A stretch of 64,000 nt of DNA, from contig CM074809.1 in the NCBI GenBank assembly GCA_037447605.1, positions 2,532,689 through 2,596,688 of the forward strand, read 5' to 3'. Below are positions 137 to 29,427 of this stretch, in pieces (within the stretch, counting starts at the first letter, position 1; each line of letters begins with the position of its first letter). Position numbers and translations under genes: made by a program. The notes under the pieces were generated by a model. The model was not told the origin of the DNA and did not search any database. It saw only the letters and a program-made list of their open reading frames with translations. This DNA comes from Zygnema circumcarinatum SAG 698-1b (taxonomy: Eukaryota > Plantae > Zygnematophyceae).

Positions 137-3100
137 TTAAGACCATCTGAAGTGCTTCAAGGATGATACGTTCTTGCCACAAACTCGGCAGCTCGTAATG
201 GAATATTTTTTTTGACAGTCTTCGCACGGACCGTAATGGGCTGCAATTGCGCAACGACAAGCCAATGGAAGCACGCTAGTCAGGCCAAAGACTCCGCAGT
301 CATCAAGACACAAAAAAAATGAATAACGTCTGGAAGAAACAATCCATGGTGGGCCCAGACATTGTTTTGTGTGTAAAAATTGAGGGCAACCGTAGCTTTT
401 GCACTAAGGTCAAAATGAAGCCTTCAAGATTGTCTGCACTAGTTCTATTGTAAGATGTAGCGAGTGAAATCAAGGGCACACCACTTTACCAAGCATGAAG
501 AATGAAGAAGCCATAGGAAGAGGGCAGCGCAGCCTTACCACAGTCCAAGACAATGTACTCCGCTTGTCTGGTCTGACAGAAGGTGCAAGCGTGCCGCAGA
601 CGTTCGGATGGAGGCACCACGCTCGGAGCGACTACGGAATCATAGGCCGGCGGCGCCTTCCCTCTCTCCCCTCCCGCTTCAGCTTGAAAACGATGGGCAG
701 CCGAAAAAGGATGTGCCTCCATGGCTCGTTCCGCAGTGGACATGGAGGCAGCGCCATGGCCAAGAGGACCATCTGTTCTCATCCCTATAGAGGGCCTCAC
801 GGATTCCATCGCAGCTACTCTTGAGTTCACTGCAGTAACAAGTTCTCCCGTGGACTTTGCCCCTACCTTTGTTCGGTTCTCTGAGGCTCTCTCAATGGCC
901 TCCTTTGGGGTATAATAGTGGTTATGGCCATGGGCGGGCAACTCCTGGGAAGCATCTCCTCTGGTCAACGGCAGGCTTGGCCAAGCAGATAGCTCGTTTG
1001 GTGACCTCGAACTAGGGGGCATCCCCTGGAGAGGCGGGCACTGCGAAGCAGCCATGTTTCTCTGTGCCATCTCCCATGGTTGGAGGACTGTATTATTGCG
1101 TACAGGGTTGATCTGCATAAATGGAACAGTAAGGTCAGTTCTCTGTGACAGAAACATTCCCACTGATGAAGTTCAGAATGAATCATGACAAACTTGTGTT
1201 CATGTTACAAACTGAATGTCAATTCTGGAACAATTCACACTGTTCTAATGAACAGTGTGAATATCCAGTAAGCGGCCTTCAGTCATACAACAGACTCAAG
1301 AAGGGCTCCTTCGTTCACCCGTAACTGCACAAGGTCAGTGCTTTTGCAAAATCTACAAATGCCACCTTACATATTACGATCACATAAAAAATACACAACG
1401 CAGTGGCCATCAAAACATTTTAAACATGCGTTTCTTTTGATGAGTTGGAGAAGCTCGCCTGGCACCCATACCATGTCCCTTCGTCGATTTTCTCCGTATT
1501 TACGTTTCCTTTTTTCCCTTTTAAGCTATTTTCTGATGAGCCAAAATTCAACGCAAGATTCACCTCTTGCGCTTCTAATCAAACGTCAGCCTATCGTTCA
1601 TTTACGCAAACGATATCTGAACATTCTTTTCAATCGACCAGTGAAACCTTCCCAGGAAAATCAGTGCCAAGAATCTTGATGATCGATTGCTTGGTGTTTC
1701 TGCAGGTGAGTTTGTTTTTCCTTTTTCTTTTTTACAGAGACCATTTGCGCCAAACTTTGAAAACGAGCATGGAATGCTATGCAAGCAAGGTGTACTGTTC
1801 CCGGTCAGAGTCTCACTGCATAAGGGACAGCACCTCAACCCCTGAACCCCCCCACGTTAGCAGCCACATCACCCACCTCCATCTCGTCCGCTACTCGCTG
1901 CAGAAAAGTCGTCCCTACCGTCCCATCGCGCGCAAGAGACCAACACTCGGAATCGCCGGGCACACTCATTCTGCACACAGCGCACCAAATGCACTCATTC
2001 AAGATACCCCGCCATCCGTTAATTGGCAACATTCAATAGTTGGAACGTATGACTTCCTCCTTTCCTAGACTCCCTCTGGACAAGAGTCAAGAATGTCGTC
2101 GTGCAATGCCTCCTACGCTTTCCAGGAGATGTGGAGTTCAGAAGTCCCTGTTTCTGCGTCCTATGCAGTGCAAAAGTGACTCACTCACATGATAGCTGCT
2201 GTGGAAGAGCGAAAAATCCCCAGCCTATCCCTTCAGCAAATATGCAGGTGCCACTCTAATTGCGACTCTAAAGCTCCACCCAGAAATAAGTGCTTGTCTG
2301 CAGTCTTCGTGGACAGTGTCCTAGTGGTTTCCTGTACTTACCTGAGCCATTGCCCCTGCTCCTCCTCCCCCGCCACGAGCGCCCCGGGCAGCAGGACACC
2401 CAATTCCTGTGCCATTCTGTCGGGCCACCGCCGCACTCTGTGACAGGAGGGAGAGACGACCTGCACCGACAAGCAGGGATTACAGGGATTACAGGGCAGC
2501 CTTGTTGGCAGGTTTGCAGGTGGGCTTCTTCTTACGTTTTGCTGGAATGTGTCTTCCAAGACCACCAACATTTGGGGCCGAAATCTCATTCAAGCACGAG
2601 AAGCAGCTATAGATCAAAGCATGTCTGTTTACATGACGCTGACTAATTTTCGCAAAAATGATGCGATTTGGATTGCATTCCACATTAACTACTACTTGGA
2701 CTCTAAGCTAAGATTGGAAATAGTAAGAAAGTCAGAGAATGGCAACCAATTCCTCTGGTACTGAGAAAAACTACGTCGTCATGTAGAATAAATTCAAACA
2801 AAACCCTGTGTCGACGAGATTTTGAGACACTGCCAGAACACCCAGCCACTCTGAGAATCAAGTGTGTAGAACCAAACAGACTAAGCTCAGGTCATGACCC
2901 ATTCCAATATCGGCTGTAAAGACTTCAGCGTTAAGGCATTCCCACATCCCAGGATCAAGACCGAGCACATGAACACCTTCTGAAAGACCTTGCCTACCTT
3001 GTATACCCACGGAAACTTTAGTCTCCCTGTGCGTGTCTCTACTAGCGTTGGTGTTGCCGACGATGACGACGTTTCCCCCCAGTCAGGTGGGTCCACAGTC

Positions 3101-6100
3101 CACCCCTTTGAGGATATGCTCCCAGATGTTCCCATACTTTGCGCCGTCCCAGCATGCACCGCCTTGGCCGCCTTCTTGGCCATTTCCACCGCCAACGGAT
3201 TGTACAGAGTTGAAGCGGCGGGAGGTGCTTTTGAGATGTTGGATGATGCCACCGCTGCAGGTGGTTTCTTTGGAGTGGAACTTGCTGCTGGCTGTCGAGG
3301 CAACATCAAAAACAGCAACATAAAGGGTCTGAAGACTAAAGGGCACTCTCATTGCAGTAGTTACATAACTTCGTTAGAGGCAAATGGAGGATGTGCACCC
3401 TTGCAAAGACAACACGGAGTGCGCTTAAAAGAGCCGTGCAGGAACTGGAACAAACATCAGTTTTCCTTTACCTAACACTTCACAACTGTTCTACTGTAGT
3501 GACTGTCTACAGGCCCCGACATACTACTCCCCCACAAACTGCCCAATGAAGCCTTACAAGGGGCAGAAGGTGACGAAACTTGGCGAGAATGGTTGCCTCT
3601 TGGTCCTCTAACGAAGACGTCGTGGAGGGTCCTTGCGCGAGCTGGTTTTCAACATTGCCAAAAAACTGTTTCCCGTATTCTGCACTCCCTTGCCTTGCAG
3701 ACTCGGCCATGAGGGGGGCCACCTGCGAGCCTTTTGGAGGACCCGCGACTGGTGGCAGCCCCGTCCTCCCTCCCCATTCCTTTAGAGCGATTTCCTTTTT
3801 GGTGAGCTCATCAGCTAGTTTATCTCTGCTACCTTCATCCATTCGTTGATGAACGAGTGAATCTAATTTGTACACACTCATGGATGTAGAAGTACTAGGA
3901 CTGTCGTTTTCTGGAATTTCTACAGCGCGGGAGGGATTGAAACCTGGAGGAACACTTGGAACACTCCTTTCAGCTTCAGGACGGGAGGAAATGAACTGCA
4001 TTTCAGCCTCCATGACTTGGAAACGACCAGTTCTACTTTCTCCTGCGGGGGAGTCTGGGGGAACTGAATTGGCTGGACGAGCAACTTGCTCATTTGATTT
4101 ATATTCTGCGTTGCGCTCCTGAATGTGCTCCTTACCTTTCGACTGATGGTCGTCTATGTCCACAAGTTTCCTAGCATGCTGAACACCGCTTGCTGACTGT
4201 TGTATGGATAAACGAGCGACCCTTGAGAAGAGATCGCGGACATCCTTATCTTTGGTATTACCATCCGTCTTCTGTGTGCCAGCTGGCAACTCCCCAACCG
4301 ACGTCTTTGCCACGTGCCGCTCCCTCATTGGCCGCCCCTCTGTGTGCATGTGGCCAGCTTCAATTGAGGCTTGCTCTGCGCCAACTCCTGATGCGATCCG
4401 ATCGACCGGAAGTACAGACTGAACAGCTGAGGAAGCATGGCCGACACTGCTACCATGTGAGCCAAGATCAGGATGCCTATCTGATGCAATGCTCGTAGAG
4501 ATATTGGCAGTAGAAGAATAAAGGCCCTCTTGAGAAGAATCAAGGCATAACTCCTCTCCTCCCCTGCCGGGTGGTTTGAGCTTCAATGGTGAGTGGGATT
4601 CTAGTAGGGCATTGCTCTGCTGCCCAGCCAGGCCATCGTGGCTATGTTCCTGTAAAGGACTTCCAACTTCAGGATGTATGGAGCCAACACCTGCGACCAG
4701 AAGTGAAGGGTCTGAGTTGGCGGCTGCTTGTGAGGAAAGGAAAAACTGAAGTGGCTGGATGGGCATTACAGTAGAGTATCCCATAAGCACTTTCAGCAAT
4801 AGGCGGTCATATATGTTGTATATGTCTTTGACCAAAAAAATATTATTGCAGTATGTCTTTACATAATCCTTCTGCTCAAATGTTTTTTTATCTCCATGAA
4901 CGTCATATGTTTTTGGCAAAGAAGCATCGACCTTGCGAGTACGAATGTTCCGGAGGTTGCAGAAGCTCGTCAAAAGCTGGAAGCGCAGTTGCGACTGGAA
5001 TTGAGACGAGAGATGCGGCCACTTGTTCAAAAGAATCCATGAGGTCCTCAACCTGCGCATATGCATCCAGGCACAAACGTTTAATGATTTCCCTGAAAGA
5101 AAGGTACTACAAACACATTGCAAACCGAGTCTAAGTCTAGGATAGGGACAAAAAAACAGTTTCCTCTGATGTTTTCAGCCAAGGTTAGGCGACACGGCCA
5201 ATTTCAACACAATGCAAAAATGATGTTGAACACTTCCATAGAATGAATCGACTGGATGTTTCTGCATTCTTTACTAAAACCTTCACCTGTTACTTCAACT
5301 CTTCAAAGATCCCTGCAAGTGAGTTATTACTACACACTGCCTACATTGTTCATGACATCAGAAGAACATGACACTAGCCATTCCCCTGCACGTTCGTTCA
5401 ACCATAGCCCATTAAAAGACCAACCAAGCGAGAATCGACAATCTTCCTATACCCCTTTCCATTTCCCCCAAAAACCAGAAACCCATGTCTGCTTTCATCG
5501 CTGCATCAACAAGAGACGGCCACCCAATGGCCGTCCGAAAAAACGCAGGTTGCACCCATGAGTTTTGGCAGAGAGAGGCAAAAGCTGCCCGGTCCTGACC
5601 TGCTGCGCGGTGAGGTAGAGCGGCACGGCCCACGCGTGCTCTGCGAAGCATCCGGAGGGGACTGCGAGACCGAGCTGCTGCTCATGCACGAGGGGGTAGT
5701 CGGTCACCAGCTGGAAGGAGACGGGCACCAACTGCCCATACTGCAAGCAACAACAACACAACGTCAATACATTTTGTTTCTACACCTGAAAGAACCAAAC
5801 AAATCGATGCGTTCGATGCGGGATGATACGTGCCTTAGATAATAAATAATCTAGCCAAACAGAAACGGGCAATTGGAATTTGAACAAACGACAGGGAGAG
5901 AATAATAGGGACTGCAACATCATATGGTCCGGCAGCTTCCGCTACATGGCTTATAAGGTGTGGTATATGCCTTACGAAATCTTCTACGGGATTTCATGCA
6001 TGTACCCTTGAACTTTACTCACATAATCCAGTCCAGAACTCACGGACTCATAAATCCCGTGCATATGGCCTGAATCCAGGTCAAACATGAAAAGGGCAGT

Positions 6101-9100
6101 CTCTCGTGGAGCAATTCGATGAGGACAAACAAGTTGATTAGGAGGCAACCAAACGGTTCCCGTTATTTTAAGCACCTCAATATCGGCTCTAGATGCGGGG
6201 ATCACCTACAACTCATACAACCAAGGATTACATCAGTATTGCGAAAGAAAGGACAATTCCTTCTTTTGATCAAAGAAATACAGTGGCAATCATTTCGTTA
6301 ATCCAACAGTTGACCTGCCCAACCACCGGTACAGCAGCTTGGTTCCCAAATATAAGCATTACTAAAAAGAACTTCCACAGGTGAATACTGAAGAAAAAAA
6401 TGGATGGGTCTGCATAAGGGCCTGCTGCCATTGAAGCAGAAAAGGACAAGCAAGCTGCGAAGCACATCCGAACGTCATAAAAACACAAACAATAAAAAAT
6501 GCTCATTAAACTTTCCAAAATTGAAAGCTTTTGAAAAAAAAAAGGGCGGAGAGGAGAGTGGGAGGATGCGAAGGAGATTCTTCATGGGGTTGTCAAATTC
6601 CATTTCATACCTCCCTCCCTCTCTTTTTCCCAAGAAAGTAAACAGCCGTACTTCGAACCAATAATATTTTTGTAAGATCCTCTCAACCGCACAAGCAGGC
6701 CATAGTTAGGTCCAAGAACATACTCTGCTACCGTCATCTTGCATTACATCCTGTCTTGGTCAACGGAGCTACTCATCTAAACCGTCCAAATGAATGCATA
6801 GTCCCTTAAAATGCTGATGTAAATCAGAAACAAGAAACTGAAATGCCGATATGCTCCAGAGTATGACTCCAGAGAAGCAGCCTTCGGAAACTCTAGAAGT
6901 ATGCATGTGCTTTCACAGATCCCTGTGTTCCCTGAAAGGAAGGACATACTTGGCCGAACGAATAACTGAACTCGGGCTGCTCATCCGATAGCTCTATCTG
7001 CTGCCAAGTCAAAGGCTCGGGAACGCCATAAGTCGGGGTAACACCATAAGTTCCTGAATCAGACATCATAGGTTCAGGCGTATTCACAAAAACGAGGTGC
7101 TACCACACTTAAATTTTACATTCTGGATAATGCACCGACGTGTGTTTCCGTACCTGATGAACCGTCTGATACTGTTGTAGAGGCCATCATGGATGAGGGC
7201 AGAAACCCGCTTAAGGAAGCAGATGGAAGCGCTGTTGCGGTAGCAGCAACTGCTGGATTGCAAGAGCCACTTTCTCCAGCCCCTTGCGAAGGGTGAGCTG
7301 CTGATGACGACAAGAAAGAAGGCAGGAAAACGGGGGCAGTGACCTGCAGAGTCGAGGAACGAGAGGGGCCATCCTTGCCTGCAGAAACCACCATAGAAGC
7401 TTCGGAGCTTCCACTCGGCTGACTCTGTAAAGGAAGGCTTGAAGGTGGAACAGAAGGAGCAGGTGATGACGGGTGAAAGTTGGTAGAAGCCGCAGTTGCA
7501 CTCGGATCGCTCTCGGTGTGGGCTTGGAAAGGTTGCTGCGCAGAAACCAAGCACCAAAAGTTTAATGGGCTAACGCCTACTCAAGAAGGACCACAACGAT
7601 AACAAACTGACAATAGCATATTTTATTTCAAACTCGTAAATCTAACATAGAAAATAGCGTGTCAAGCGAGAGGAGCTATTGCAGACCAGGAGTGGACGGT
7701 TAACAAAAAAAAAAGTCATGAAACGAACCCAACGTCTTCGCGTCGTCTACGTATGATTGCACTTGCATTTTTCTGTCGTAAAGTCTGTCCTAGCTTCTTC
7801 TTCTTTGAAACATCGGATATAAGGGAGACTATAAGAATGTTTCCCAGGAAAGTACGACTACCGCAACTTCTAGAATGTTAGGCTTAAACTATCTAAAGCT
7901 TAAGCCAGAAACATTTCCAGAATTTTACAACCTACCGGCTCAACGAATCGACTCATCTTCAGCATTACCTAGAAATACGGCGGTCCTGCTTCCAGGGTTG
8001 CTCCAAGTTCACTCATCATGCACATGCGACCTGCTCTAGCATGTCCTGTCCAGTCGGCGGTAGCTCATAGTTTACACTGAAGACATGGCCACTTTGTGGG
8101 TTTGGTGTATGATGGTGTCTGGAAAGCTACCTGGCGAAGAAGGTGAGTGCATTTGAGCTGTCCACTGGAAGTAGAATCGGAGCGGTTAAGCACCTGTGCT
8201 GTCAAAGCCTCCTCAAATGATCTGGCAGCAACCAACACTCCTAGCACCAAAGTTAGCAATTTCTTGAACCAATAAGCATTGAGCACTTTCAAATATCCTT
8301 GCTTTTACGTTTCAACAGGCTGTCTATATACAATTCGTTAATCAGAATCTGAATACTGTTCGAAGAACACGCTTGAGTTGCAGGAAAACAGACAAATCAG
8401 CCTTGACCATCGAACTATCACAACAGATGATTAAGAACAGACAGCAGCTGAAGCGGTGCTCAGCGTCGGTCACATTTGTAACCCAAGAACCCTAAAGTAA
8501 ACCCTGAACCCTCGAGGCATAGAGGTGTTTAACGATCCAGGAACTGACTTCACTGACTTCCATTTCCAGATTTTCCAAAAGTTTTGGGCCTACGTGAATG
8601 TGACCACAGCAACTTCGTGCTCAAAGTAACGCTTGATTTCCTCCACACACGCTCCGCCAGCAGTGAACTTCTCCACCAGCTCAAGGTCGTCAATGAACTG
8701 GTCCACGTCCTCCACAAGGAGATGCGTAGGCCTGCACGCCAACTGTTGACCACATAGAACAGCGGGACTAAGAGTCATCACGCATTCCGAGTCGATTCAT
8801 TTTTTTTTTTTTTTTCGCTCCTTTTCGCTCAAGGAGCGACGGTGAATGAAATTTTTAATTATATGAGTTTCTTGCTAACATGGAGAGTCATTTTGACAAA
8901 TCAAGAAATGGTCAACAAGCAGAGGGGAGTGTCTAAATGTAAGACGGGTAAAAGTAAGCAGAAGAGTTTTGCCAAACAAGGAACCGTTAGGAACGTAATC
9001 TATTGAACCGAATCAATATTCCTCGAAAGGCACCATTACTTTGGTTAACACGCCTAACCAGGGTGTGTTCCCATGTGCCACTTCCGTGAGCTTACAAGTT

Positions 9101-12100
9101 CAGAAGGCTTGACAATGAGGTCTCCCAGAAGGTCGGCTAAGGGCGCAGACCGATAATGACTAGGTCCCAAATTTCTGGACGAGGAGTTATCCAAAGGCTA
9201 CACAAACACAGCCGAAACACATCACTGCTGTCAGACCTTAACTGTAGCGTGCAATCCGTAGACATATACAAGTGCTACGATGGAGGGGACAACAGCATCC
9301 CCATAGCAAATACAAATGGTTGAATTGGTGCTGTGGGAAAGTTCGTCCTTGTTAGTATTCATCAAGATCAAGGCATCTCCAGAAACAACTTCACAATTGG
9401 CAAGTATTGTCACGGATGCCCTCAAACCCCTTCTGAAAGGAACATTTCCAAACATCAGGGGTCTGTTCAAGAAAGTCAAAAGTACAGATAAGCAAACATG
9501 GAATGTGAAACCTCAATTGCAAGTGGAGAGTTTGTAACTCACAAGCATGCATACATTAGAGACAATGCATTCCAAGTCCTATACTCCCTAAGCCAAGCAT
9601 TCTTCTCCTGTTTGTGAGGACGGTGCAACTCCAATCAGGTAGAAGCCCATCAAATCCTTTTCTAGAATGTTTACGATTGGAAGATCCAATTTGAATGCCT
9701 TTAATTCTAGCTTTATACATTAACATTGCACTTACTGGAAATTCTAAGTCATCATAAGAACCAACAGAATGACTGTGTTCCGCTCCATTGGAATGATCGT
9801 TCTGACTGAAAGCATTCAAAACAATCCCTGATTCCGTCAGTGCCAAATGTCCTCGATTGCTGTCCAATTGCGAGGCTCCCTCCGAAGGCATAGAGCCACT
9901 GAGCGCAGAGGCTTTCACTTTTCCCTGCAGGAAATCCGCCCACCCCTCTCCTCAAAACCTCGCTATATTCCGAGAAGCTTGAGGCTGCTCCTCCCTGCCA
10001 GCCTTTGCCTCAAAACTATTGTTCCTGCTCGCACTCCAAGCTGCTCCGGTGAGAAAAAGAGCAACATGACTACCAGAATGCAAAAGCAGCGCTATTTATT
10101 AAGAGGTGGACGATATTAGAAACATGGCTGCAGGCACCTCACCTTCTTGTTTTTTGATTTCTTGGCCTTGCTGCTAGGCAACAGATCCATTGGCTCACTC
10201 CTAACAATAAGCTGAAGAGGAAGGTCTTCATTAAAGGGCTTCTGAAGCTTCGTGCTCTCTACTGCCTGAACAATTCCAGTACGACGGCGGTTAACGGAGC
10301 CTGAAGCCGCATATGGTTGAAACAAGTCTCATGCCGGTCGTACCTATTGCTCACCTGTCTAAATTCGAGCCTATGTTTGCCATCTTAGAATACTGAAAAG
10401 ATAAGCAGATTTCATTTGTGTATGACTCCAAATATAACGACATCTGCACGCAGTTCTCAGCAAACAGAGAACTTCTAGTGGCAAAAAAACCCCTAACCCC
10501 TGATGGCCATGTACGAAATGCGTATTCAATATCCTTGATACTGAAAGCTTTCTCAGTCTGAACAGGATTTGTGACCTTACCGAAGTAGTTTCATTCAAAA
10601 GGGAGTGTTTAGGCCATTCAGCATTAGAATTTTTTAGCTTCACTAAATAGCATGAGTGTACGAAACAAGTATCCATAAAGAAGACTATAGAGGATTCAAG
10701 CCAACTCACTGATTTATAATAGAGAGTTCCTCTGGCAAGCTTTTAAGGAAGCGATGAAGCAGAATCAGAATCAGAATTTAAGTTTGATGGAAGAAACTTA
10801 CTTGACTATAACTCTTAGACACTGAGGCGTGCTCCGTATCCTCCTGTATATGAAGGACACTTCACTGCATCAGTATGATGGCTCCGTAAGCTTTACATTA
10901 CACTGATTATAATGCTTTTCCAGATGTGTCTCAGTTGCCAAAGCAAGAAGCAGCCACCCACTATCCGTATTCAGAAACGATATCCAGCATAGTCCTGGCA
11001 GGCCATCCCCGCAACTGCCATGTCCACTCTCGAAAAAGTAGAGAACCCTTACAAAATCGAGCGTGATTACCTAACTTGTTTGGGCAGCAACAGAAAAGAT
11101 GCAAAATGGAAGACGTTGTAATGACAAGGACCCTAGATAACCATTGCAAATGATTCAGTAATTCACACCTGCTCTGTAGCGTTCTTCGTGGACTTGACTG
11201 GCTTGGAATGTGTTGAATCCCGCATAGAGCGTTTGTTCTGAAGCTCAAAATTCTCAGGTGCCATTCGCTCTGGTACAGATATCGCTGCAGATACTTCTTC
11301 TTGTTCTTGTCGCCTGAGCGTCCGGTTGTCCTTCCCGGTATGCTGCAAAGGTGGAGCTTCGACCAGAGGGGTCCTCTTCTTCAGGTGAACCTTGGTCGAA
11401 TTTTCATCTTTAGTACCAATCTTGTGTCGTTTGTCCTACAAAGCAACAAAAATTACTTACAAGAAACTGAGCTCCCCCAGCTTTTCAACACTCGAGGAAC
11501 ACAACAACGTCCGGGAGTAGTTTCCCAAAATAAATAAATCCACATATAGAGTGCTCCAAACCAGCATAACCCGCTAGTGACCAATGGCTTGTGGACGCCC
11601 ACAATTGCACATCGAATGCTGACTCCACACAAGCTTCCCGCCTTCAATCTTTGTTCTACTACATTTATCACATGCAAAATACAATGTCCACATAGTCCAC
11701 AGCTAAACATGTTTTTCTTAAACTTGGCAATGTAAATGCCAGCAATGGAGACGCTAACCTTTGATGTCTTGAAGGCTCGCATATCCTTTTCCTTGTCTTT
11801 TTTTTTCTCGTCAGCGATAATGTACACTATCTACAAAAATCAAGAAAAAGGCAAGTTGCTGTTAGAAAGAAAAACCTTCAATGAGTATGTCTGGTGTAAA
11901 CGGAAATAAAAAGTGTAAATGGAAATAAAAAGAAGGGAGGGAGGGGGAAGGAGGGGGGACGAGGGGGGACGAGGGGGGACGAGGGGGGAAATAGGGCCTA
12001 AGACAGACAGATGTGACCACTCCAAAAACTGTGTCGATGTTATCCGGCACTGAGATTGACGATGAGTTAATCCACTCCATACCCTCTCAATTTCGTGTAC

Positions 12101-13479
12101 TTCACTTGAAAACCGGAGACGACCAACATATGATAGAGGGATAACAAAAGTACACATAGACATTAAATGTAATTTTCTGTATTTCAAGTTCCAGGACACA
12201 AACAATAACCTCCGTGTTGTCTTATAGGAGAGCCAAGGTTGGGAATGGTGCGACCTTCTCTTTCTCTTTGACGTAGGCTCTGTTGATAAACCCCTCACAA
12301 TCTGTAAATCAGCGCCCTTCCTCCAGCCAAACGCCCAACTTAGCTAAAAAAGAAAAAGAATGGCTCCAAAAAAAACTGACAAACTCTACCAAACACGAAA
12401 ATTGATCAAATAGCAAACTGGCATAGCAAAAATGTGATCAACTGCAGCTATTGTAACAAATTTTACAGATATTCCCTGGTTGCCCCAAAGTTGTATTGAT
12501 CAAGTAAACCCTGCATAAGTTTTTAATGTGGCCATATGCCGCTTCTACAGTAGTGTTCAAATACCTGCCGAAAAGCCACTCCCTAAAAAAAGATCGACGA
12601 GCATCTGATGGCATACTACTACAGACACCTCTAGAGCCTGTCATATGCACCTTTGGAATGACCAAGTCACGTGTAGCCAGTCCAAATTCTAACAACCATT
12701 TTACATTGAACCACATATTTGGATGAAAGATACCTGGTGTTATGCAGGCAGCACCATATTTAAAGGCGAAATCGTCCATGGCATTATTCATCTCTACAAA
12801 GCACGGGGCATGGTACATTATGAAGCAGCCCTGCGTGCATGACATCTCATATCTTCTTTGCGATACTGTAAGTTCGTGCGAATTTCCGGGACACCTGTCC
12901 GTATCTCTACTTCTGCATACACCTATAATATGGTCTACTCGATCGTCCTCGTCCTTCGCTTCAAGAGGAGGCAGTATTCCGGACCTTCTCAACTCATCAA
13001 GCTCCTTCATTCTCTCTAGCCTTCTCAAATCAGCCAACTCCTTTGCGACCTCGACCACTTGCTCTTCCCTGTTGTTTCTCTGTCTGCCCTGTTGCTTTTT
13101 CTTCTTCTCCTCACGCTTCTTAGCTTCCCTCCTTTCTACAGCCAGACTCCTACAAATTCTATCATTTTTTTGCTGGCCTTCCTCAAGAGCTTGTCCTGCT
13201 TTTAATGGATACATAGAAATGGCACTATCGTCAAGCTCATCAGAATCCCACTCGGCTAAATTATTCGAATTACGTTCCTCACTCGTGGCTGCTAATTTTT
13301 GTCTAGACTTCTTAGGCGACCTATTCATTGCATTCCTCCGTAACTGACTTGCTTTTATTTTCCGCTGCCTGTCCCATGCACTAAGCTGAACTCCTCCGAT
13401 GGTCGGTTTCAAAATTTTCTCTCTCGAGGTAATGATGTGCGAAGGGACAGGAGATTCCTGCTCCTTGAGAGCTGGCATA

Positions 13480-13526
<47 letters not shown>

Positions 13527-13619
13527 ATCATATTCATCGTCATCGTCACTGTCATCGGCTTCTTCTCCTTCTTCATTTTCGTCTTCCTCTTCTCCTTCTT
13601 CCTTTCCATCATCTTCCAT
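137..13619 (-). CDS. Large multi-exon (~25 exons, roughly 1,700-1,900 aa) putative RING E3 ligase: acidic N-terminus, TTC3/DZIP3-like Cys/His domain, RRM, DCD domain, long low-complexity region, C-terminal C3HC4 RING
   Basis: Phase-compatible GT-AG exons traced by hand: 13619-12734, 12301-12255, 11830-11759, 11435-11169, 8742-8594, 8221-8131, 6205-6023, 5740-5600, 5052-4932, 4690-3558, 3291-2998, 2460-2342, 1970-1877, ~1145-539, 240-137. Spliced RING reads CTFC..DCAH..CEDC..CRVC. RRM reads THLLVEDVD..ELVEKF..VVTFTSFEEALTAQ. DCD reads LFMFDLDSGHMHGIYESVSSG..LTAQQVEDLMDSF. Junctions near 10850-10130 and 6760-6210 are unresolved, so a two-gene model is not fully excluded. Confidence 0.65.
13480..13555 (-). 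repeat. (TCATCG)n coding microsatellite giving a poly-Asp tract
   Basis: Tandem TCATCG on +; translates to DDDEYDDDDDDDDDDDDDDDDD on - within the first coding exon. Confidence 0.9.
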
Positions 13620-14164
13620 GTCCGGAAACCTGGCATAACTTACAAAACAACTGAACCGTGTTTGCTCCGCCATGCGATTGCCGGTTGACTCAAATTCTCT
13701 CTGTTGCGTACTGTCTACTTGCATGCGTCTTATGCATGCATACAATTTTCCCCGGGAACGCTGCAAGATGGCAGCCTGACTTTACGACGTCGGGCACCAG
13801 CTGGCGGAGCCACAACCAGTGGGCCCCGGCCCTTTTTGGGCAGGCTCCCTCACCTCCTGCAGGGCCAGGCCGCGGCTTGGAGGGAAGGGGGAAAGAGAGG
13901 GCCACGTAGGCACAATATAGCTGCCACGTATGCAGTGGATACACGTGGCTCCCTGTGATTGGTCTTTCGCATCTGCAACGGATCTCGATGCCAGTACGCC
14001 CACACTGGTAACCGGCCGGTGCCCTTTCGAAGGGCGGTTTGTGCCTCCACGAGGGCAGCGGTCGGTCGGACTCACGACGTGATCGGATGGATGCACATGG
14101 ACACGACGAAATGTAGAACCGGAAGGGGAACCGGTCACAAGGAAGCTCCTAGCTTTGCTCTTTT

Positions 14165-14906: not shown

Positions 14907-17900
14907 TTAGAACTTAAATGTTAACTCAACATCTTCGTACCCAAACTGGGCCCTATGAGTGTTATAGAGTACATGGACGGCTTTGAAGTAGTCATCTCTT
15001 AAAGCATCCACCTCCTCCTCTGTTGGATTTGGAGTAGTGAAAGCAGGAGCAATGGGCTCCCCCACCACAAGTGTAACCGCTTTTGCTCGCGGCAACGGCA
15101 AAAACCCTAAGAATCCGAAGGGCAGAAAAGGAACCGGAAAACCAAAACGCTTGTACGTGTACCTCTGCAGTGAAAATGCAGCACAGGTGGGACCATTACC
15201 TTATGACAATAGAACACAAATAGCAGCATAGCATGCACCTATTTCAAACATAGTTTAAGATCTAGAATCAGAATCAAAAAACCCAGCTCCCTTCCGTCAA
15301 AAATGCAAACTTTAGCCACCTTCCACCACTAGTCATATGCATACTCCCTAACCTTCTCTTCTTTGAATTGGACAACACAACAAGGTCACAGAGAGACGCT
15401 GGCATGCTCCAAGGGTGTCCTTCACTTTTGCTACATTCTTCTCCAGTGCACACCTGCAGTGCAGGCCAATGTAGGAGATTGTCGAACAGCTTTGATTCTC
15501 CAAAACTAAAAATGGGAACCAACGATGCTCCTGTTCTCATTGCCATGCGAATGAAGCCTTTGTGGCGCGCACAAAGAGTGACTATCCCCTCTTGCTGCTG
15601 CATGTGGTAGGCCAGCTCCGACTGCAAACCCGGCAAACCAATTCCAGCCCGTCAGGACCTTACATGTCAAAAAAGTAGAGGACATCCCGCCTTCGGAGCA
15701 TACTACTTGCCTCCATGCATTCAAACTCCCAACATTCCTCTCAATATGCAAAAAAATCACCTAAAAAAGTATTCACTTTTGAAACTGCCCACCTGTCCTC
15801 CCGGACATAAAATCACCGACTTCTTCTCTGCGAGTGCATTCTCGAAAACATTCTTCGAAACCTCCCTCATACCCGCCCACATATTCAAGTCTCTCAGAAA
15901 TGGAACCCGAAAAACAACAGAAGCTGCAAGCCCGACCGGGTGCACTTCTGGAAAGAGGTTTCGCCATGCGGATGTGAGGTGAATCCAGGCGATGAAGGAC
16001 GGAAAAAGACCATGAGGCTGAGCCATTTCACCAAGTGCACACACGTTAGTTCAGTCGTGTCAAATGAGATATAGAAATAAGTCAAGTCAATAGTTATACA
16101 ATGAAACACCGTTATAAGTGAGCCATATACAAATTAGGAATTGAACTCGTCAATATGCGCTAGAATTGACTCAGACTCAGAATTCTGAAGTCGACTGGAA
16201 CGTAATCTTATGATTCCAATACTCCCCTGTTGGTAAAAGGAACGTGTGACGGAAGCCGAGTGCCAACAGTAAGAGGAGACAAGTGAAACAAACGCCACAT
16301 ATGATGCAACTTGAAACAGTCCGACTTTGCCTTTCACCCATCCGCAGCAGCTAGGGCAGATTCTGCACAAGGAGATGGTACATGTGAGACATACATGAAA
16401 TCCAAATATGTATTTCTTAGAAGGTGGAAGAGGTTGCTCCGACTCCCTCACTATGCGCACTCCTCTGAAGTGCAGCAACGATGCCTCCTCCAGCCATCGA
16501 GAGAACCTGCAATACCATAGCCAGAAATAAGTAAGCAAAGTTCGACTTGATCCGCATTTTTTCAAACACAGCAACCACATTCCTGAAGTGAAAGTCAATA
16601 ACAGCACCCGCATTTCCCGCACAATCTGTTCAATGATGCTGCTGTCATGTGGTGATTGACGTCCTATCCGAGTAGTCATTGGTTGCACGGACATGTTGTA
16701 CGCACATTCACACGAACCCGAGCAAGATATCCTATGTCTAGCAGAGGCAAACATGTCTGCAGGTGGTCCGAACAGACCACTTACGGGCCTTGCAACGCCC
16801 GCCATGTCCTGCGGCCCGTCCTCTCGGGCCGGCCCTGGAATGTGACTCCGTACGGAATCGCAAAAGCGAAAATTACAGCAATAGCCCAGCTCGTTGGGAG
16901 GGTCATAAATAAAGAAAGGCAAAGCGAAATACTAAATATGTGATTGCAATAAATTACAGAGAGCAGGGCCAATGACTGTGCCCTTACTCCAATCCACCAC
17001 AAATAGTCAGAGAGAGAGGCCTCCGGAAGGTTCCATGGCCCAAAAAGAGCAGTCTGCTTTTGCCGAGAACTCCAATGGGGAGGCTCGACGGTGGCTGAAG
17101 GATGGCCCTTTGCGCACTTGTTATACGTCATTTTTTCCACGGGACTGAGAAGCGGTTGAGGAACAGGGACTTCGCTGATGTCATCAATCGCAAGTGAAGA
17201 GGCTATGTGAGAGTGGTGGTCTCTGTTAGCATCCTGGACCTCACCATGGCCTTTGTCATAGGTAATCAATTGTCTGACGTTTGAGAGAGGATAGTCTAAC
17301 TCCGTTTGTGTGGGAGATTCGAAGATATTCGCTGCATCCTCTTGCAATTCCGTTGAATATTCTGAATCTAAAGGGGGCGCAAAGGAAGAGCCCAAACAAG
17401 TCTTGGCAATCTTTGAGGGGATGTTTGATGAAGAGAATAACCACAGAGAGGCAGCCACCTGGAGGGGAAAAGCAAGAACAACCCCAATCGTGATGAGAAT
17501 AGAAGACTCAGCCGAACGTCAGCTGAATACTTTCCAGGGGTCGAGTGAAAAAGGAAGTGTACCCTAATAATGTCCGATAATTTGCAAGGTAATTATGACG
17601 AACTCACCAGTGTCTCCGACAGAAAGCCGCAGACTCCGGCAGCGAGCAGGAGGCCTGGAGGCCAAAACAGTTCCATGTCTGCCCGTTCAGAATCAGAATG
17701 GTTCACCCACTGATTCCCTCCACGGCCCATACATTCTCTGCGTGCTGCTGCGATGGAGAACATGAGGAGTGGCGCTGCCGACGGAAGTAGTGTGAGGCCA
17801 AAAAACGACCACGCCAACGCCTGCGTGAGAACAAACGCCGCGCCTCCATGAAACGGCTGCCAAAACCGCCAGCCGCGAGTCCCATGACGCCAATGGCCTC

Positions 17901-21207: not shown

Positions 21208-24200
21208 TCAGATATTCAACTTTTCCACCCAATATCTCATCTGTTCCGCCACCTGCGCCGCTCCTGTCGATCCGTATGATTGAAATTTAGTTATCGAATT
21301 TTCAACTCCGAGGAATGTATACACGTCTTCTTCAAAAATGGGGTCGAGGCCTCGGAAATCATCCAAAGACAATGCCTGTAATTCGCATCTCCTTGAGACC
21401 GCTAATGCCACTGCTCGTCCAACTACATCATGTGACGTCCTGAAGGGCATCCCCTGTGAAGAAGGAAAGACGTGACACGGAGCAATAGGCAAGTCGATTA
21501 GCAGCAACACAGTTGAGAACACAGAAGCTTAGAGTACATCAAAAGCGAAACCAGCCAGAGGGCTTAAAAAGCCCGAGGAAAAGCCACCTAACAACTAACT
21601 GTAAGAAGATGAGTCACAGTTATCGGAAATGTCTGTCCTTCGATCCAATGCTCACCTTGTAGACGAGATAATCTGCAAGGGTCGTGGCATCCAGGTGTCC
21701 TGCTGGCAGTGACTGCTGCAAACGCTCCTTATTGAAGGTGATGTTGGCTGCAAACTCTGCGCTCACTTCCAGCACGCCAAGGACAGTCTCCACACTGTCG
21801 AAAAGCGGCTCCTTGTCCTCCTGCAGAAAACCAAGATGACGGAAATTTATGCCGACCGACGAAGCTAAGAAACGACGGACACAAACATCTAACACGAGCC
21901 ATAGTCAAAGTTAACCGCATTGGAAACTGCAACAAGATTTTTCCATTTTCCAGGTGAATGTAACTCAGTAAGCCATATGTGTCCTACTGTCCACACAGAT
22001 GGAAATACTGGTTGCGATGACTCGCTGATTGAGTTACTCTATTTAAAAAACCCGATTTACTTCATGGTGCGGAAGATGAACATAGTACGGGAATGTTTCA
22101 TGTTTCATTTGGGCAGGAAAGTCACCTGCAAGTCCCTGTTGTAGGCCAATGGCAACCCCTTGCAAAGCACAAGGAGTGTGGTTAGATCCCCAATAACTCG
22201 TGCTGATTTCCCCCTTACAAGTTCCATAGGATCTGGATTTTTCTTTTGGGGCATGATGCTGCTCCCGGTCGACACGCGATCACTTGGCGTAATGAACCCA
22301 AACTCTTCGGTGGCCCATAAAACCCACTCTTCTGCTAGGCGAGAGGTGTGGATAGCGATGATAGAGTTCGCAGAGAGCAGCTCGATGAGGAAATCACGGT
22401 CAGACACACCATCTACGCTGCAGGGAGTTACCATGTAGACATGAAGAGGTTTTAGTAATCGCACATAAAGCAGGAAGGACTTTCAGCAGTAAAAAGAAAG
22501 TGTCCAAATTTGTGTGCACAACCCACACAATCACCTGCACGAATGAATGGAGACTTGCCTGTTCCGTAGAGGCGCCGTGAAACCTAATGCTTGCGCTGTG
22601 AAATGGCGGTCTATGGGCAGACCCGTGCCAGCCAATGCACAGCTTCCTAGTGGCGAAAAGTTCAATCGTGTTCGGCAATCAGCTAATCGTCCAGCATCAC
22701 GTTCCAACTGCATGCCTAACAACACTGCTGACCATTAGCCACGAGGTGAAGGCCAAGAGCTTTCATGACAAAAGAACTTTGCTGACTGCCACCTGCAAGG
22801 AGTTCAATGACGTCGTCCAAAGATATTGCAGAAAAGTTCGTCTTCCAGCCGCCAGTAAGACTCCTACTCTGTGCCTAGGCAATTTCTTCACGCAGTTCCA
22901 CACTCTTCTTTGGTAACTGTGCAGGTTTTCCGAATAAGACGATATTTTGCGGATGAAATTCCCGAATTTACTCAAGCATCCATCACTGTTTCAGCTCCAA
23001 CCTTTTGGAACGGATTCATAGTGTCAAGAACTTCATATCAACCTCCCTCCCCCAGCACTTCCAGGACAGGAGTACTCACCATCTCAACATAGGCTAGGAG
23101 CACATGCTGCAAAAGCAGTGGCTGCGCTCTCTGTAGATGCGTGTATCCCGGAACCACCAACCCCTCATTTGCAATAGCCAGCTTCACCAGTGCCACCTGG
23201 CATCACTCCAAACGTTCTGTCAGAGGGCAAGATGCGCATGGAATGAAAGCGGGGGGAAACTCACTTAGCATAAATACACCTAAGGGCAACACGCTTCCAC
23301 GCCACGTATCCTGGCAACTCTGTGGGATGCTAACATTTAAAATAGCAGCTCTCGTTCTTATACTACTAGCGTTGGTCGTCAGGCTTTCTAAGTCACCCCT
23401 TGAATTTTGTTTGTATACAGCCAGTCATAGGAGATTGCCATTCGGGGCAGGTCGCCCCCATCCATCAAAGCAGAGCTTCAAATCAAGACGGCATAATCTA
23501 TCCTTTCATACTGTCAGATACATCAAACAAGCCCACGCGTTTCAAACGCTTTCCCTCAAAAGCCTCACCTGCAACTTCTGAATGTGATCAATGAGCTGAC
23601 CAATGGCATCACGGCACCAAAGGCGCACATCTGTCACCACTTGGTCATTGCGACTACGAGCCGTGTGAAGCTTCTTGGCAGGTTCCCCGATGAGATCTGT
23701 CAGGGCAGCTTCGATGTTCATGTGCACGTCCTCCCGATCTGCTCGCCACTCGAATTCGCCATTCTCAATTTTTTGTTCAATTTCATCAAGCCCCCGCAAG
23801 ATTGCGTCTTTGTCTGACTCAGACATGAGACCCTGCTTGTATTAGTCACCACACAAAGAATGCGAAGGTTAATTTCAATTTGGCTGATAGGACACCTCAT
23901 TAACTGAACAGTTTGCTCAGAGGTCAAAGATAATAGGGGAAAACCCTCGAAACAGAAACCAAGTTGCAGGTAAATTCAACCTCATTTTTGTCATACAAAA
24001 ATGAACCCTCACAAACACTTCCACAACATGGCCTCTCCTAGAGTCAGCCAGCTCCTATATCTCTTCAGACAGTCAACAGACAATTCTAAACCCTATTGCA
24101 AGTTAAGTGCCAGAATTCTCCGAAGTGCACAATTTCAATGCCAGGCTCCCAGACACAAACTAAAGTGTCCAGCACAAAAGATAATTATGAATATTTCATC

Positions 24201-25344
24201 AGACCCCATAAGACAAGCATTGAAACAGAACGCTAAATATTCAAGTAAAAGGGAAAGCTTCCACATGTCCAAAATTTTGGGGTCCTATCTAGACTCAGAA
24301 TTCTCCACTTTTAATCATATCATCTACTCCTCAAAGTGATAATGCAGCCTCTAAACAATTTAATAAAAAGAAACAATTGAGCTCTAGCATTCATGACAGC
24401 AGGTTAAAAGCTCTCTAGTAGGTATCTATGGTTGTGATTTGCACACCAAGACAAGAAACCATCCTTTCATTTAGAATAAGGACCTTTCTCCTTTTAATCA
24501 TATTTCTAAAAAATAATCTCGGCTAGAAAGGGAAGAAGATAAATTCAAAGAGCAACAATACACCTATATAAACAAACGGTTAATCTCCTCAAGACGTGCC
24601 TCTGTTGGCTTCCGCTAGATAGTACATGCCAAACTAAGTACGCCTCTCATTGTGCTCCATCACGAACAAGAGCCTGTTGTGACTAGAAAGGATTTAACTC
24701 CTTAAGCAAACCGACAGCCCGCCAAAACTTATCACTAAGTTTTCTTAGAACAAGCGAGAATGCCACTGCAATCCTCTGGGTGTGATTAAAAGTTACGGAA
24801 GCTGGCACAATTGCTTGGCACTAATTCGACATTCTCTCTTTATGCAAGGTCGTCGTTAGCAGTTAAAGACCCTTTAGCAGGTCTCAAACTTCAGAAGACG
24901 ACAGCACACAACTTTGAGCCACAGAAAATACAAAATACGCAACAGGCAACTCTGAGTTTCCAGCTTTTAATTTACACTTCGAAGAGACTCTCGTTTTCAA
25001 AGTACCTGTTTTGCAAGCATGCTGGCGTGTGCGCGGCTTCCCTGTAAATCAAACTTGTAAAGTTTTTTGTCGTATGAGACAGACTGGCCGAACTTCTCAA
25101 CTGCGGGAGTGACGGAATCTTCAAACCTCCCTCCCCACAGCTTGGCTTCCTTCGCATCCTTATCTGTTGCAACCGACATCATGGCTGTGCCAACGCTAGA
25201 AGCTGGAAATGCTGCTGACAGCGCGCCTGACGCCACGCCCCGACTGGAAGGAAGCGCTACACTGCGCAGAGTCCCTCGAGATGCGACTGTAGGAGCTCCC
25301 ACCGCTGCTGCCAGCTGCAAACACCCCCCGGGTCCTGCGGCCAT
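21208..25344 (-). CDS. ASL: Argininosuccinate lyase with probable plastid transit peptide (7 coding exons)
   Basis: [65 protein letters not shown] (fumarate lyase signature), [12 protein letters not shown]. Ala/Ser-rich N-terminus from ATG 25344. Confidence 0.97.
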
Positions 25345-25885
25345 GGCGCCACGTCCACGCTCCGCTAAGCAGCCTGACTCCTCTTCTCTCCCGCCTTTCC
25401 TCCCTCCCTCGTTCCCTCCCTCGTTCTCTCTCCCTCCTTCCCGCACAGACAGGCTTCTCCTCAGCAGCAGCAGCAGCTAGCCTGAAGTTTGAAGCGGAGG
25501 GCAAGCACAAGTCAGCTCGTCCCCAGGAGACGGTTGGATCTTTCGCACGCGCGAGAGGCCGTCGGTGCGGCGGCGGCGGCGGCGGCGGCGACTCGCCGGA
25601 TCCACCGCCACGCGGCGGGGCCCCGCGCGGGATCCACTGCCGGCCAATCGCTGCGGCCGGAGCGGACACGTGGCTTTCGCTTGGACTTGCGGCGCCGCCT
25701 TTTTTACACGCAAGGTGCCGTATGGTACGGGGGGGGGGGGGGTGCGAAGGCCGCCGGGAACACGACACGGCAGACTTGACTTGCGGAACATCGAACGGAA
25801 GGTTTCTTAGGGCATCGCCATCGTCAGATCAATGCCGCCACATCATTCTTCTTCAAGGATTCTTTCAATACGGAAAGGGAAAGAT

Positions 25886-26668: not shown

Positions 26669-28131
26669 CTCTCTCTCTCTCTCCCTTTCCCCCCCTCTCA
26701 ATGGTTGCAACCACTGACTAGCTTCCCAGCCAACCATTGCAAGTAACTTCAACCACTGGACTATTGATTCCCGCTCCACCCAACCATTGCTAATGGTTGC
26801 AACCATTGGCTGGCTACCCAGCCAACCATTGCCAATAACTGCAACCATTGGACCATTGATTCCCGCCCCACCCAACCATTGGATCCAATGGTTGTAACCA
26901 TTGGCTGGCGTCCAGCCACCCATTGCCAATAAACGCAACCATTGGACCATTGATTCCCGCCCCACCCAACAATTGCCAATGGTGGCAACCATTGGCTCGA
27001 TATTCAGCCAACCATTGCCAATGTCTGCAACCATTGGACCATTGATTCCCGCCCCACCCAATGGTTGCAACTATTGGCTGGCTATCCAGCCAACCATTGC
27101 CAATAACTGCAACCGTTGGACCTTTGATTCCCGCCCCACCCAATCATTGCCAATGGTTGCAACCATTGGCTGGCTACCCAGCCAACCATGGCCAATAACC
27201 GCAACCATTCGACCATTGATTCCCGCCCCACCCAACCATTGGATCCAATGGTTGTAACCATTGGCGTGCTATCCAGCCAACCACTGCCAATGACTGCAAC
27301 CATTGGACCATTTATTCCCGCCCCACCCAACCATTCAATCCAATGGTTGGCTAGATCCGGAACCAACGGTTTGCAAATCGCGACCATTTCAATGGTTGAT
27401 CCAACCCATGGTCGTCCGCCCTGCCCTTGGCCCGGAATGTTTTCGGCTACCCTTCGCGGACGTCCGCGATTGGGCGTGCGTCGTCCGGGCAGCTGAAGGT
27501 TTAGTCCAGGGCAGCCCTACACTGTTTTCGGCTGCCATATCCTCGAAGCAAACGTCCGCGATTGGGCGAGCGTCGGCCGGGCAGCTCAAGTTTGGCGCCG
27601 GGCAGCATTCAAATGGTTATTTTGCCTTCCCCGCGAATGAATCGTCCGCGATTGGGCGAGCGGTGGCCGGGCAGCTGAAATTATTTCTGGTCCTCCGTCG
27701 CCGCGATTCCGATCAGGGGCAGCCCCCCTACGGCGCGTCCCGTCACGTCGCGCGCACCGTACGTCAGCATTCCCCCACGTCGGTGGCGCCACCTGTACGT
27801 CCGTACAGTCTGATCCACAGGGGAGATGAGGTAGGCGCGCGGCCGGCCATTTTGGGCCACCCCTTTGTCGTCCGGGCAGCTCGCTGCCAAACTTGAGCTG
27901 CCCTGCCGACGCTCGCCCAATCGCGGACGCTTGCTTCGCGTATGGGGCAGCCTGTAATAGGTTTGGTCTGCCCGGGTCCCTCCCCAAGCCCTCGCCCCGC
28001 GGCCCGGGCTGTCATGTCTTCCTTCCTCCCTCCCTCCCTCACCGACCACCCGCTCTCTCTCACTCTCTCGCTCACTCTCCCTCTCTCTCTTCTCTCTCTC
28101 TCTCTCTCTCTCTCGCTCTCTCTCTCCTCCT
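26669..28131 (+). mobile_element. Composite repeat element A, copy 1 (CT tract + palindromic 92-bp array + second 92-bp array + inverted unit + CT tract)
   Basis: Collinear and highly similar to 32066-33180. No transposase, TG..CA ends or TSD recognised. Confidence 0.65.
26696..27350. repeat. ~92-bp minisatellite, 7 units, made of overlapping palindromes
   Basis: Anchor gattcccgccccaccc (first copy gattcccgctccacc, last tattcccg) at 26766, 26858, 26952, 27044, 27126, 27218 and 27313. Contains CCAATGGTTGCAACCATTGG and CAACCATTGGATCCAATGGTTG palindromes and a TTGGCTGG-CTAC-CCAGCCAA hairpin. Confidence 0.92.
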
Positions 28132-28139
28132 GCCCATCC

Positions 28140-29417: not shown

Positions 29418-29427
29418 NNNNNNNNNN
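29418..29427. other. Assembly gap (10 N)
   Basis: Run of n in the sequence. Confidence 1.

Follow-up and report, generated by a model that had tools for sequence, protein, structure and literature searches.

The window, a 64,000-nucleotide stretch of Zygnema circumcarinatum SAG 698-1b DNA, carries on its minus strand a gene spanning positions 137-13619, from an ATG at 13619 to a stop codon at 139-137. These are exactly the bounds proposed in an earlier sequence-only reading, which had placed a Cys/His block, an RRM, a DCD domain and a RING in one gene; all four were found, in the claimed order, on one strand and in compatible frames. After the start methionine comes an acidic stretch, which is also seen at the N termini of P0002 and P0018. 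The same layout was found in Klebsormidium nitens (GAQ89571.1, locus DF237486.1), in Mesotaenium endlicherianum (ME000058S08624) and at a Sphagnum locus, and these three further lineages reinforce the four-domain architecture. Of 20 raw open segments taken from the window, most gave no Pfam match. The domain calls, weak in the window alone, became solid through the PF19179 match of Mesotaenium, the three-domain matches of Klebsormidium and the DCD domain of Sphagnum, and clear through these relatives and the use of exact exon pieces. Domains of the window were read from separate exons. An RVT_thumb match in the window (E = 0.067) was judged not significant. Judged by sequence, the gene and its four-domain architecture are real and conserved.

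Exon 1 (13619-12734, minus strand) encodes the acidic run, a K/R/E-rich stretch and the larger first part of the Cys/His block (approximately 12935-12735); in the streptophyte proteins, the basic K/R/E-rich stretch directly precedes this block. Its donor (CAG/GTATCT, the slash marking the splice site) leaves one base over. Exon 2 (12301-12255, minus strand; acceptor TTTACAG/AT, donor AAG/GTCGCA) completes the TTC3/DZIP3-type block with a D-C-x-G motif. The split codon, G plus AT, reads D, which completes the CITP-D-C motif seen in the relatives. Exon 2 continues exon 1 within the query (P0002 residues 385-403), and the same small exon was found in Sphagnum. When searched against 1.84 billion representative proteins, exon 1 matched P0001 (E = 6e-14), P0002 (E = 5e-12) and P0003 (E = 7e-4); in a local tblastn comparison with the Mesotaenium protein P0002 (E = 4e-16), the match ended exactly at 12735. 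Six cysteines and one histidine are invariant in the block, and all are retained in the window. The earlier assignment of this block to the TTC3/DZIP3 type could not be reproduced from the window alone, which gave no Pfam match at E ≤ 0.1; in the relatives, PF19179 scored 27.2 bits (P0002, above the cut-off of 26.9), 26.1, 21.5 and 20.9 bits, with P0003 at E = 8e-6, and GAQ89571.1 matched TTC3_DZIP3, RRM_1 and DCD. A sequence search of the PDB with the Cys/His block returned nothing. An AlphaFold2 model of the P0003 block, built from a four-row alignment (pLDDT 63.8), gave nothing but meaningless antibody-like matches in the PDB by Foldseek (E > 0.2).

Between exon 2 and the first RRM exon lies a linker stretch (12254-8743, minus strand) with weak collinear exon candidates at 11134-11069 and 10952-10908; the collinear Sphagnum matches in this stretch are weak (E = 0.047 and 0.015). 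Pfam gave nothing for its open pieces, and the residues that come after exon 2 in the relatives had no match in a motif search of the window. By blastn, the window gene showed no DNA-level conservation with either the Sphagnum or the Klebsormidium locus, and the linker exons could therefore not be located in this way. These 3.5 kb without an assigned exon would suit a different reading, in which two or more adjacent genes, such as a TTC3/DZIP3-type gene and an RRM-DCD-RING gene, were merged by hand-splicing; so would the status of both the Mesotaenium and the Klebsormidium model as predictions, the latter with a wrong C terminus. However, neither a start-like or stop-like feature nor another gene was found in the stretch, and the N-terminal block is joined to the RRM and DCD domain in single annotated models of Mesotaenium and Klebsormidium, two independent annotations. 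Order and strand are constant in the four lineages, whereas the adjoining genes are not the same from species to species. The conserved blocks are collinear and on the same strand relative to P0002 and P0018 and to the Sphagnum locus; 11 of the 14 matches between the window and Sphagnum fall in one collinear chain, and only 15 of 2,000,000 permutations did as well. Several intron positions are common to the window gene and its relatives, and phases agree at the four joins examined, with GT-AG sites at each. We regard a merger of neighboring genes as very unlikely.

The RRM is formed by two exons on the minus strand, exon a (8742-8595, β1-α1-β2-β3) and exon b (8221-8131, α2-β4). Exon a matched P0002 (E = 1e-6) and K. 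nitens (E = 1.6e-5), with ends that coincide with the K. nitens exon ends, and exon b matched Sphagnum (E = 4.7e-7). At the junction between them (8595/8221), the donor leaves two bases and the acceptor (GCCAG/A) gives one; the donor of exon b is CAG/GTAGCT. Pfam returned RRM_PARP14_3 for window exon a below cut-off (E = 0.026), and RRM_1 for K. nitens at 18.3 bits against a cut-off of 20.7. A family profile searched against the PDB gave 23 matches at E ≤ 1, all of them to RRM proteins (lowest E = 3.3e-4, across some 80 residues), and the RRM call of the earlier reading is upheld by this search. The aromatic residues of RNP1 and RNP2, the canonical RNA contact in RRMs, are absent in all four species, with the exception of one phenylalanine at the central RNP1 position in K. 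nitens; the window reads L-L-V-E-D-V at the RNP2 position and H-E-V-A-V-V-T-F at RNP1, up to the final F, and the relatives otherwise read much alike. The RRM is atypical on this evidence, and RNA binding by it is doubtful because these aromatics are missing. The missing aromatics also fit an explanation in which the gene and its domains exist as described, with the RRM-like and DCD-like ones serving as protein-binding adaptors in an ordinary substrate-recruiting RING ligase or scaffold that plays no nucleic-acid role. The PDB matches of the profile include RBM8A/Y14, the GW182 RRM and the PTB RRMs, several of which contact proteins through the surface of the RRM.

The DCD domain is spread over three to four exons on the minus strand. 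Exon 0 (6387-6315; acceptor TTCAG/T, donor CAG/GTCAAC, phase 0) would encode the first strand of the domain; it was aligned by eye with the DCD start in P0002, P0018 and Sphagnum, and, of the DCD exons, it is assigned with the least certainty. Exon a (6175-6023; acceptor at 6175 or 6205, donor TAT/GTGAGT, phase 0) encodes the central motif and matched Pfam Dev_Cell_Death (PF10539) over profile positions 37-60 with 20.9 bits, below the cut-off of 27.8 (E = 3.2e-4), as well as K. nitens (E = 5e-5) and Sphagnum (E = 1e-4). Exon b (5740-5600; acceptor TTGCAG/TATG, phase 0, donor CAG/GTCAGG) gave collinear matches to P0002 (E = 0.28) and K. nitens (E = 0.059), and its donor is located where the Sphagnum frame ends. 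A tentative exon c (4994-4932), with acceptor and donor both in phase 0, may supply the last helix (LL..F); it is similar to the helix found after the LYL motif of P0002 and P0018. A further match resembling the start of a DCD domain (9479-9378), extending partly into a K. nitens intron, was set aside as probably due to chance because its position upstream of the RRM is not collinear. Searching the PDB by sequence with the DCD region returned nothing.

On sequence comparison, the window DCD is divergent, which again suits the protein-adaptor explanation. Against that explanation, the core motifs of the domain are preserved, and the orthologue from Sphagnum exceeds the Pfam cut-off of 27.8 with a score of 29.8 bits; K. 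nitens (E = 7e-5) and Mesotaenium (E = 0.077) also match, all at the homologous place. In addition, three modules, each of which has a nucleic-acid link in other proteins, have stayed together with a basic K/R-rich stretch across a very long period. We consider the adaptor explanation a lesser possibility, although the strongest of the competing ones.

A Ser/Pro/Ala-rich open stretch between the RRM and the DCD domain (7580-7119, minus strand, approximate bounds), in which all three minus frames are open, is a probable linker exon; it has no Pfam match, and a low-complexity linker exon occupies this position in K. nitens. After the DCD domain, a large, disordered-looking exon rich in Ser, Gly, Ala and Glu (4754-3558, minus strand, approximate bounds) lies within a 555-codon open frame (3510-5174), likewise without a Pfam match, and a similar low-complexity exon follows the DCD domain of K. 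nitens. Within 3132-1877, three short blocks on the minus strand (3132-2986, 2463-2341 and 1993-1895), with exon bounds partly set, gave collinear matches to Sphagnum (E = 0.03, 0.051 and 0.004). A perfect donor (CAG/GTAAGT) is present at 2342, and Pfam returned nothing for 2890-3348 or 1838-2032. The 3′ end of the gene contains more small exons than a simple model would suggest.

The C3HC4 RING is interrupted by an intron. Its first half, from the Cys at 587 to base 539, is encoded by an exon at 1162-539 (minus strand, approximate acceptor, with a long open frame upstream) and lies within a 228-codon open frame; the last exon (240-137, minus strand) runs from the His at 238-236 to the Cys at 181-179 and ends with the stop codon, after a tail of 13 residues. 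The halves match complementary parts of the 49-position Pfam profile zf-C3HC4_3, the first at positions 3-21 (E = 0.021) and the second at positions 21-48 (E = 0.003). The first half also matched Sphagnum (E = 9e-4) and K. nitens (E = 0.006), and the second matched Sphagnum (E = 0.012). At the junction (539/240), the donor GTG/GTAAGG leaves one base and the acceptor TTGCAG/CC gives two. Read from the separate exons, the pattern is C-x2-C-x11-C-x-H-x3-C-x2-C-x8-C-x2-C, with all eight zinc ligands at canonical spacing. K. nitens also has the RING, interrupted at the position and in the phase seen in the window, and the second half there scores 26.7 bits against 27 (E = 4.8e-6); the Sphagnum RING is divided between the same two residues as that of the window. 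The annotated Klebsormidium model reads the RING in the wrong frame, and public models therefore hide the full architecture. The Mesotaenium protein model contains no RING.

If the locus were a decaying copy of such a gene, domain scores in the window would be expected to be weaker than those of the relatives, as they are, and the protein libraries searched contained no protein identical or nearly identical to that of the window gene. Yet every conserved block is open, as are the 555- and 228-codon frames; the eight RING ligands and all invariant N-terminal Cys and His residues are in place; and GT-AG sites of matching phase occur at each of the four junctions examined. Of the explanations considered, a pseudogene is the least credible.

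Only three relatives were found among the 1.84 billion representative proteins, none of them from a seed plant, and the apparent absence of the family from seed plants in so large a library points to its loss after the bryophyte split. Searches from the window returned no animal proteins. A metagenome scan recovered Sphagnum contigs only, and two word-based protein searches with Mesotaenium regions returned only the query itself, one of them being swamped by low-complexity words.

The reading that we favor, with a probability of about 0.6, is that this is one gene, encoding a long, mostly disordered protein with four folded modules in fixed order that would act as an RNA-associated RING ligase. 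The modules would be a TTC3/DZIP3 Cys/His block of two-zinc type, an atypical RRM, a divergent PUA-like DCD domain and a C-terminal C3HC4 RING followed by a short aromatic tail. In the proposed mechanism, the RING would recruit a ubiquitin-loaded E2, while the upstream modules would choose the site at which the ligase acts. The DCD domain, the basic stretch before the Cys/His block, or both could hold the ligase on nucleic acid, the RRM could contact either RNA or protein, and proteins on the same RNA would be ubiquitinated. Since its layout recurs in Klebsormidium, Mesotaenium and Sphagnum, the gene represents an ancient and so far undescribed kind of putative ubiquitin ligase in the plant lineage, one that may be guided by nucleic acid.

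The DCD domain could read a modified base, but this would be the weakest step of the proposal. The suggestion in the sequence-only reading that recognition of modified RNA is coupled to ubiquitination is weakened because the RRM lacks the RNP aromatics and the DCD domain is divergent. The corresponding full model, an ancient streptophyte ligase whose DCD domain reads a modified RNA base and whose RING ubiquitinates the proteins on that RNA, appears improbable to us. If true, it would be an RNA-side counterpart of UHRF1 and the first tie of the DCD family to the ubiquitin system, and a layout with an N-terminal zinc module and a RING at the end would be common to it and to animal DZIP3 and TTC3.

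Several known systems resemble the favored RNA-associated ligase in part. CNOT4 is an example of a ligase with both a RING and an RRM. Such RRM-type ligases combine the two domains in one polypeptide, with the same logic of RNA-tied ubiquitination; in the present gene, by contrast, the RING is C-terminal, the RRM is without RNP aromatics, and a PUA-like domain and a TTC3/DZIP3 module are added. No sequence relationship to the RRM-type RNA-binding ligases was found. Animal DZIP3 (hRUL138) and TTC3 share the TTC3_DZIP3 domain (PF19179) and a C-terminal RING with the streptophyte proteins. Their RING is of the RING-H2 type, and DZIP3 carries a HEPN domain and TTC3 a TPR. The streptophyte RING is instead C3HC4, of the zf-C3HC4_3 type, and no Pfam match to HEPN or TPR was found in the window pieces, P0002 or P0018; the animal proteins, in turn, are without an RRM or DCD domain. 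The K-rich region of DZIP3 and the K/R/E-rich stretch before the streptophyte Cys/His block are both basic. RING ligases carrying RNA-binding domains are a known class that includes DZIP3, counted there by virtue of its K-rich region, and those with an RRM form one family within it (PMC5707401). The TTC3/DZIP3 zinc module is not confined to animals, and the plant lineage also pairs it with a C-terminal RING.

Plant DCD proteins belong to the same Pfam family that is matched at the corresponding position in each of the four species, above cut-off in Sphagnum, but the DCD domain described here has diverged and sits inside the protein, between an RRM and a RING. In their survey of DCD architectures, Bell et al. 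name none of RING, RRM, TTC3 and DZIP3 as partners (PMC7641849), and literature searches found no paper describing the combination, in agreement with the earlier impression that it was undescribed. The DCD domain has been grouped with EVE and YTH, modified-base binding being a prediction, and its roles in plant stress and cell death have been reported without a demonstrated ligand or mechanism (PMC7641849); no experimental DCD ligand was found in the literature searched. A conserved fusion of DCD, RING and RRM offers a concrete hypothesis for one branch of the DCD family and suggests that DCD works beside RNA and ubiquitin. The nearest precedent for reading a base and then ubiquitinating is provided by UHRF1 and the plant ORTH/VIM proteins, in which a PUA-like reader, SRA, is joined to a RING; SRA is listed among the PUA-like domains that bind 5mC (PMC7641849). 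The streptophyte protein differs from these in having DCD rather than SRA and no PHD or Tudor domain, its likelier target would be RNA, and the comparison is offered as an analogy. Relative to the literature, the gene appears to be a new variant of the RNA-binding or reader-coupled RING ligases.

The comparison has also exposed the frame error in the public Klebsormidium model, by which the RING had been hidden. Homologous proteins are already present in public databases as unnamed models.

An exhaustive phmmer search with window positions 12651-13400 as query returned three matches in total from 1.84 billion representative proteins: a 165-residue metagenome open reading frame (ORF) (P0001; E 6e-14), a 1318-residue protein (P0002; E 5e-12) and a 147-residue ORF (P0003; E 7e-4). 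No identical or near-identical protein was found among these matches. Cluster look-up identified P0002 as Mesotaenium endlicherianum ME000058S08624 and placed P0003 with the 1700-residue Klebsormidium nitens protein GAQ89571.1 (P0018), which carries the UniRef name 'RRM domain-containing protein'. The P0001 ORF was located on long contigs (L005-L007), which are Sphagnum DNA, since the adjoining SF3b1 ORF matches annotated Sphagnum proteins at 100% identity. JGI metagenomes, when scanned, yielded further Sphagnum contigs only. No seed-plant, fern, liverwort or other-moss match to the N-terminal block was detected at E <= 0.001 in libraries holding such proteomes; many seed-plant proteomes are present in the collection related to the 1.84-billion library, yet none gave a match. 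The distribution of the family looks patchy, comprising Klebsormidium, Mesotaenium, Sphagnum and the window species.

Alignment of P0002 and P0018 to the window by tblastn resulted in same-strand matches in protein order, at 13607-12735, 12305-12249, 8724-8596, 6160-6029 and 5743-5591 (minus strand). This order was kept in the Sphagnum-matching blocks (13052-12732, 8223-8125, 6133-5999, 3132-2986, 2463-2341, 1993-1895, 593-489 and 244-185, minus strand), and counterparts of the first RRM exon, the second part of the DCD and small exon 2 were also located in Sphagnum. A single chain contained 11 of the 14 window-Sphagnum matches obtained at E <= 0.051, and was equalled by 15 of 2,000,000 random orders. 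The locus has different neighbors in each species (a DGAT-like gene in the window, SufBD in Klebsormidium, SF3b1 in Sphagnum), so general synteny does not explain why the four blocks lie together. Judged from its genes, the contig looks like DNA of a green-lineage eukaryote.

Exon 1 runs to 12734 (CAG/GTATCT), leaving one base, and exon 2 starts at 12301 (TTTACAG/AT); the split codon encodes D and recreates the CITP-D-C motif seen in the relatives. Two bases are left at the 8595 end of the first RRM exon, the second starts at 8221 and supplies one base, and the DCD exons (6387-6315, 6175-6023 and 5740-5600) are connected by phase 0 joins. The RING is split past its third Cys, with one base over at 539 and two bases at 240 (all minus strand). 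In Klebsormidium, the RING is split at the same place and phase as in the window (TGCG/GTGAGT), and the ends of the first RRM exon are identical in placement. Introns after CITP and after the DCD LYL motif are common to Sphagnum and the window. The sequence-only reading had placed TTC3/DZIP3-like, RRM, DCD and RING domains in one gene; collinear blocks, junction phases and the domain scores of the relatives confirmed and extended this architecture.

Stop-free frames on the gene strand (minus) were found at 12441-13781 (447 codons, containing the proposed start Met at 13619), 3510-5174 (555 codons) and 489-1172 (228 codons), with short frames at 8593-8796 and 5987-6205; the last, at 140-403, is terminated by a stop at 137-139. 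Comparison of the raw window pieces with Pfam gave hints only, from Dev_Cell_Death (E 3.2e-4, under its cut-off) and RRM_PARP14_3 (E 0.033), and no match to TTC3/DZIP3 or RING. Outside the domains, the predicted protein looks mostly disordered, with long low-complexity open frames that have no Pfam match.

The TTC3/DZIP3 domain (PF19179) scored 27.2 bits in P0002 versus a cut-off of 26.9, and 26.1, 21.5 and 20.9 bits in P0003, P0018 and P0001, respectively. In the exon 1 part of this block, six Cys and one His are invariant, and exon 2 adds one Cys, a set that is enough for two predicted zinc sites. A K/R/E-rich basic stretch precedes the block in all species. The predicted structure of the P0003 block was poor (pLDDT 63.8), and no match to it was found by Foldseek in the PDB.

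Against Pfam, P0018 matched RRM_1 (E 0.002) and Dev_Cell_Death (E 0.0055). An RRM profile built from the RRM exon of three species and two full proteins had 23 matches in the PDB at E <= 1, all of them RRM proteins, the best being chloroplast ribosomal protein cS22 (E 3.3e-4, ~80 residues). The elements follow the beta-alpha-beta-beta-alpha-beta order expected for the fold. The aromatic RNP residues are absent from this RRM, and it may bind protein instead of RNA. The DCD is divergent, though its central motif is retained: a Sphagnum ORF (L005:16282-16677) exceeded the DCD cut-off (29.8 versus 27.8 bits, E 5.7e-7, profile positions 4-64), and the K. nitens exon and the exact window exon (6029-6175) reached E 7e-5 and E 3.2e-4. 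A stretch at 9378-9479 (minus strand) resembles the start of the K. nitens DCD region (E 0.018); it lies upstream of the RRM, is non-collinear and matches partly within a K. nitens intron, and is probably a chance match.

The two window RING exons matched complementary parts of zf-C3HC4_3, the first half positions 3-21 (E 0.021) and the second positions 21-48 (E 0.003). All eight zinc ligands are present with canonical spacing, and a short tail containing aromatic residues comes after them. The second K. nitens half by itself scored 26.7 bits versus a cut-off of 27. Both K. nitens halves fall inside the annotated gene or immediately beyond it, at 21262-21327 and 21896-21961 of DF237486.1 (L004). 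The annotated C-terminus of GAQ89571.1 is the same DNA in other frames and the model stops early, so that no RING is visible in the database protein. In its true form, the K. nitens C-terminus appears to consist of a C3HC4 RING and then a short tail. The Mesotaenium protein model likewise has no RING at its end. With the RING missed, the four-domain layout is invisible in current annotations. Extending the architecture search beyond the window showed the layout kept from Klebsormidiophyceae to a moss and, judged from these sequences, it is real and conserved across that range.

Ligases that combine a RING with an RNA-binding domain form a recognized class of CCCH, KH, RRM and K-rich families, to which DZIP3 belongs (PMC5707401). 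Bell, Wolf and Koonin placed DCD, EVE and YTH in a PUA-like group with predicted modified-base binding, in which SRA is another reader; their survey of DCD architectures makes no mention of RING, RRM, TTC3 or DZIP3 (PMC7641849). The sequence-only reading noted no earlier description of the TTC3/DZIP3, RRM, DCD and RING combination, and literature searches likewise found none. It is reasonable to infer that the ligase would be guided by nucleic acid. UHRF1-type proteins join SRA to RING fingers, a DNA-side precedent for the reader-plus-RING logic of the window gene. Modified-RNA reading is possible, though unsupported.

Between exon 2 and the first RRM exon, 10964-11380 (minus strand) gave a sub-threshold, nonsignificant match to RVT_thumb (E 0.067), with no other sign of a retroelement. 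Dispersed repeats are visible at 26.6-28.5, 32.4-33.0, 41.2-41.9 and 50.7-51.2 kb, and the ORF translations of 27681-28406 and 32420-32986 are almost word-for-word alike. A periodic unit with GA-type microsatellites ('ERER' runs in translation) occurs at three other places in the window. Assembly gaps of 10 Ns lie at 29418-29427 and 45033-45042. By eye, neighboring minus-strand ORFs resembled a putative DGAT2-type acyltransferase C-terminus (14907-15101), argininosuccinate lyase N-terminal exon (24997-25446), VPS2/CHMP2 exon (30411-30824) and HECT ligase C-terminus (59096-59554).
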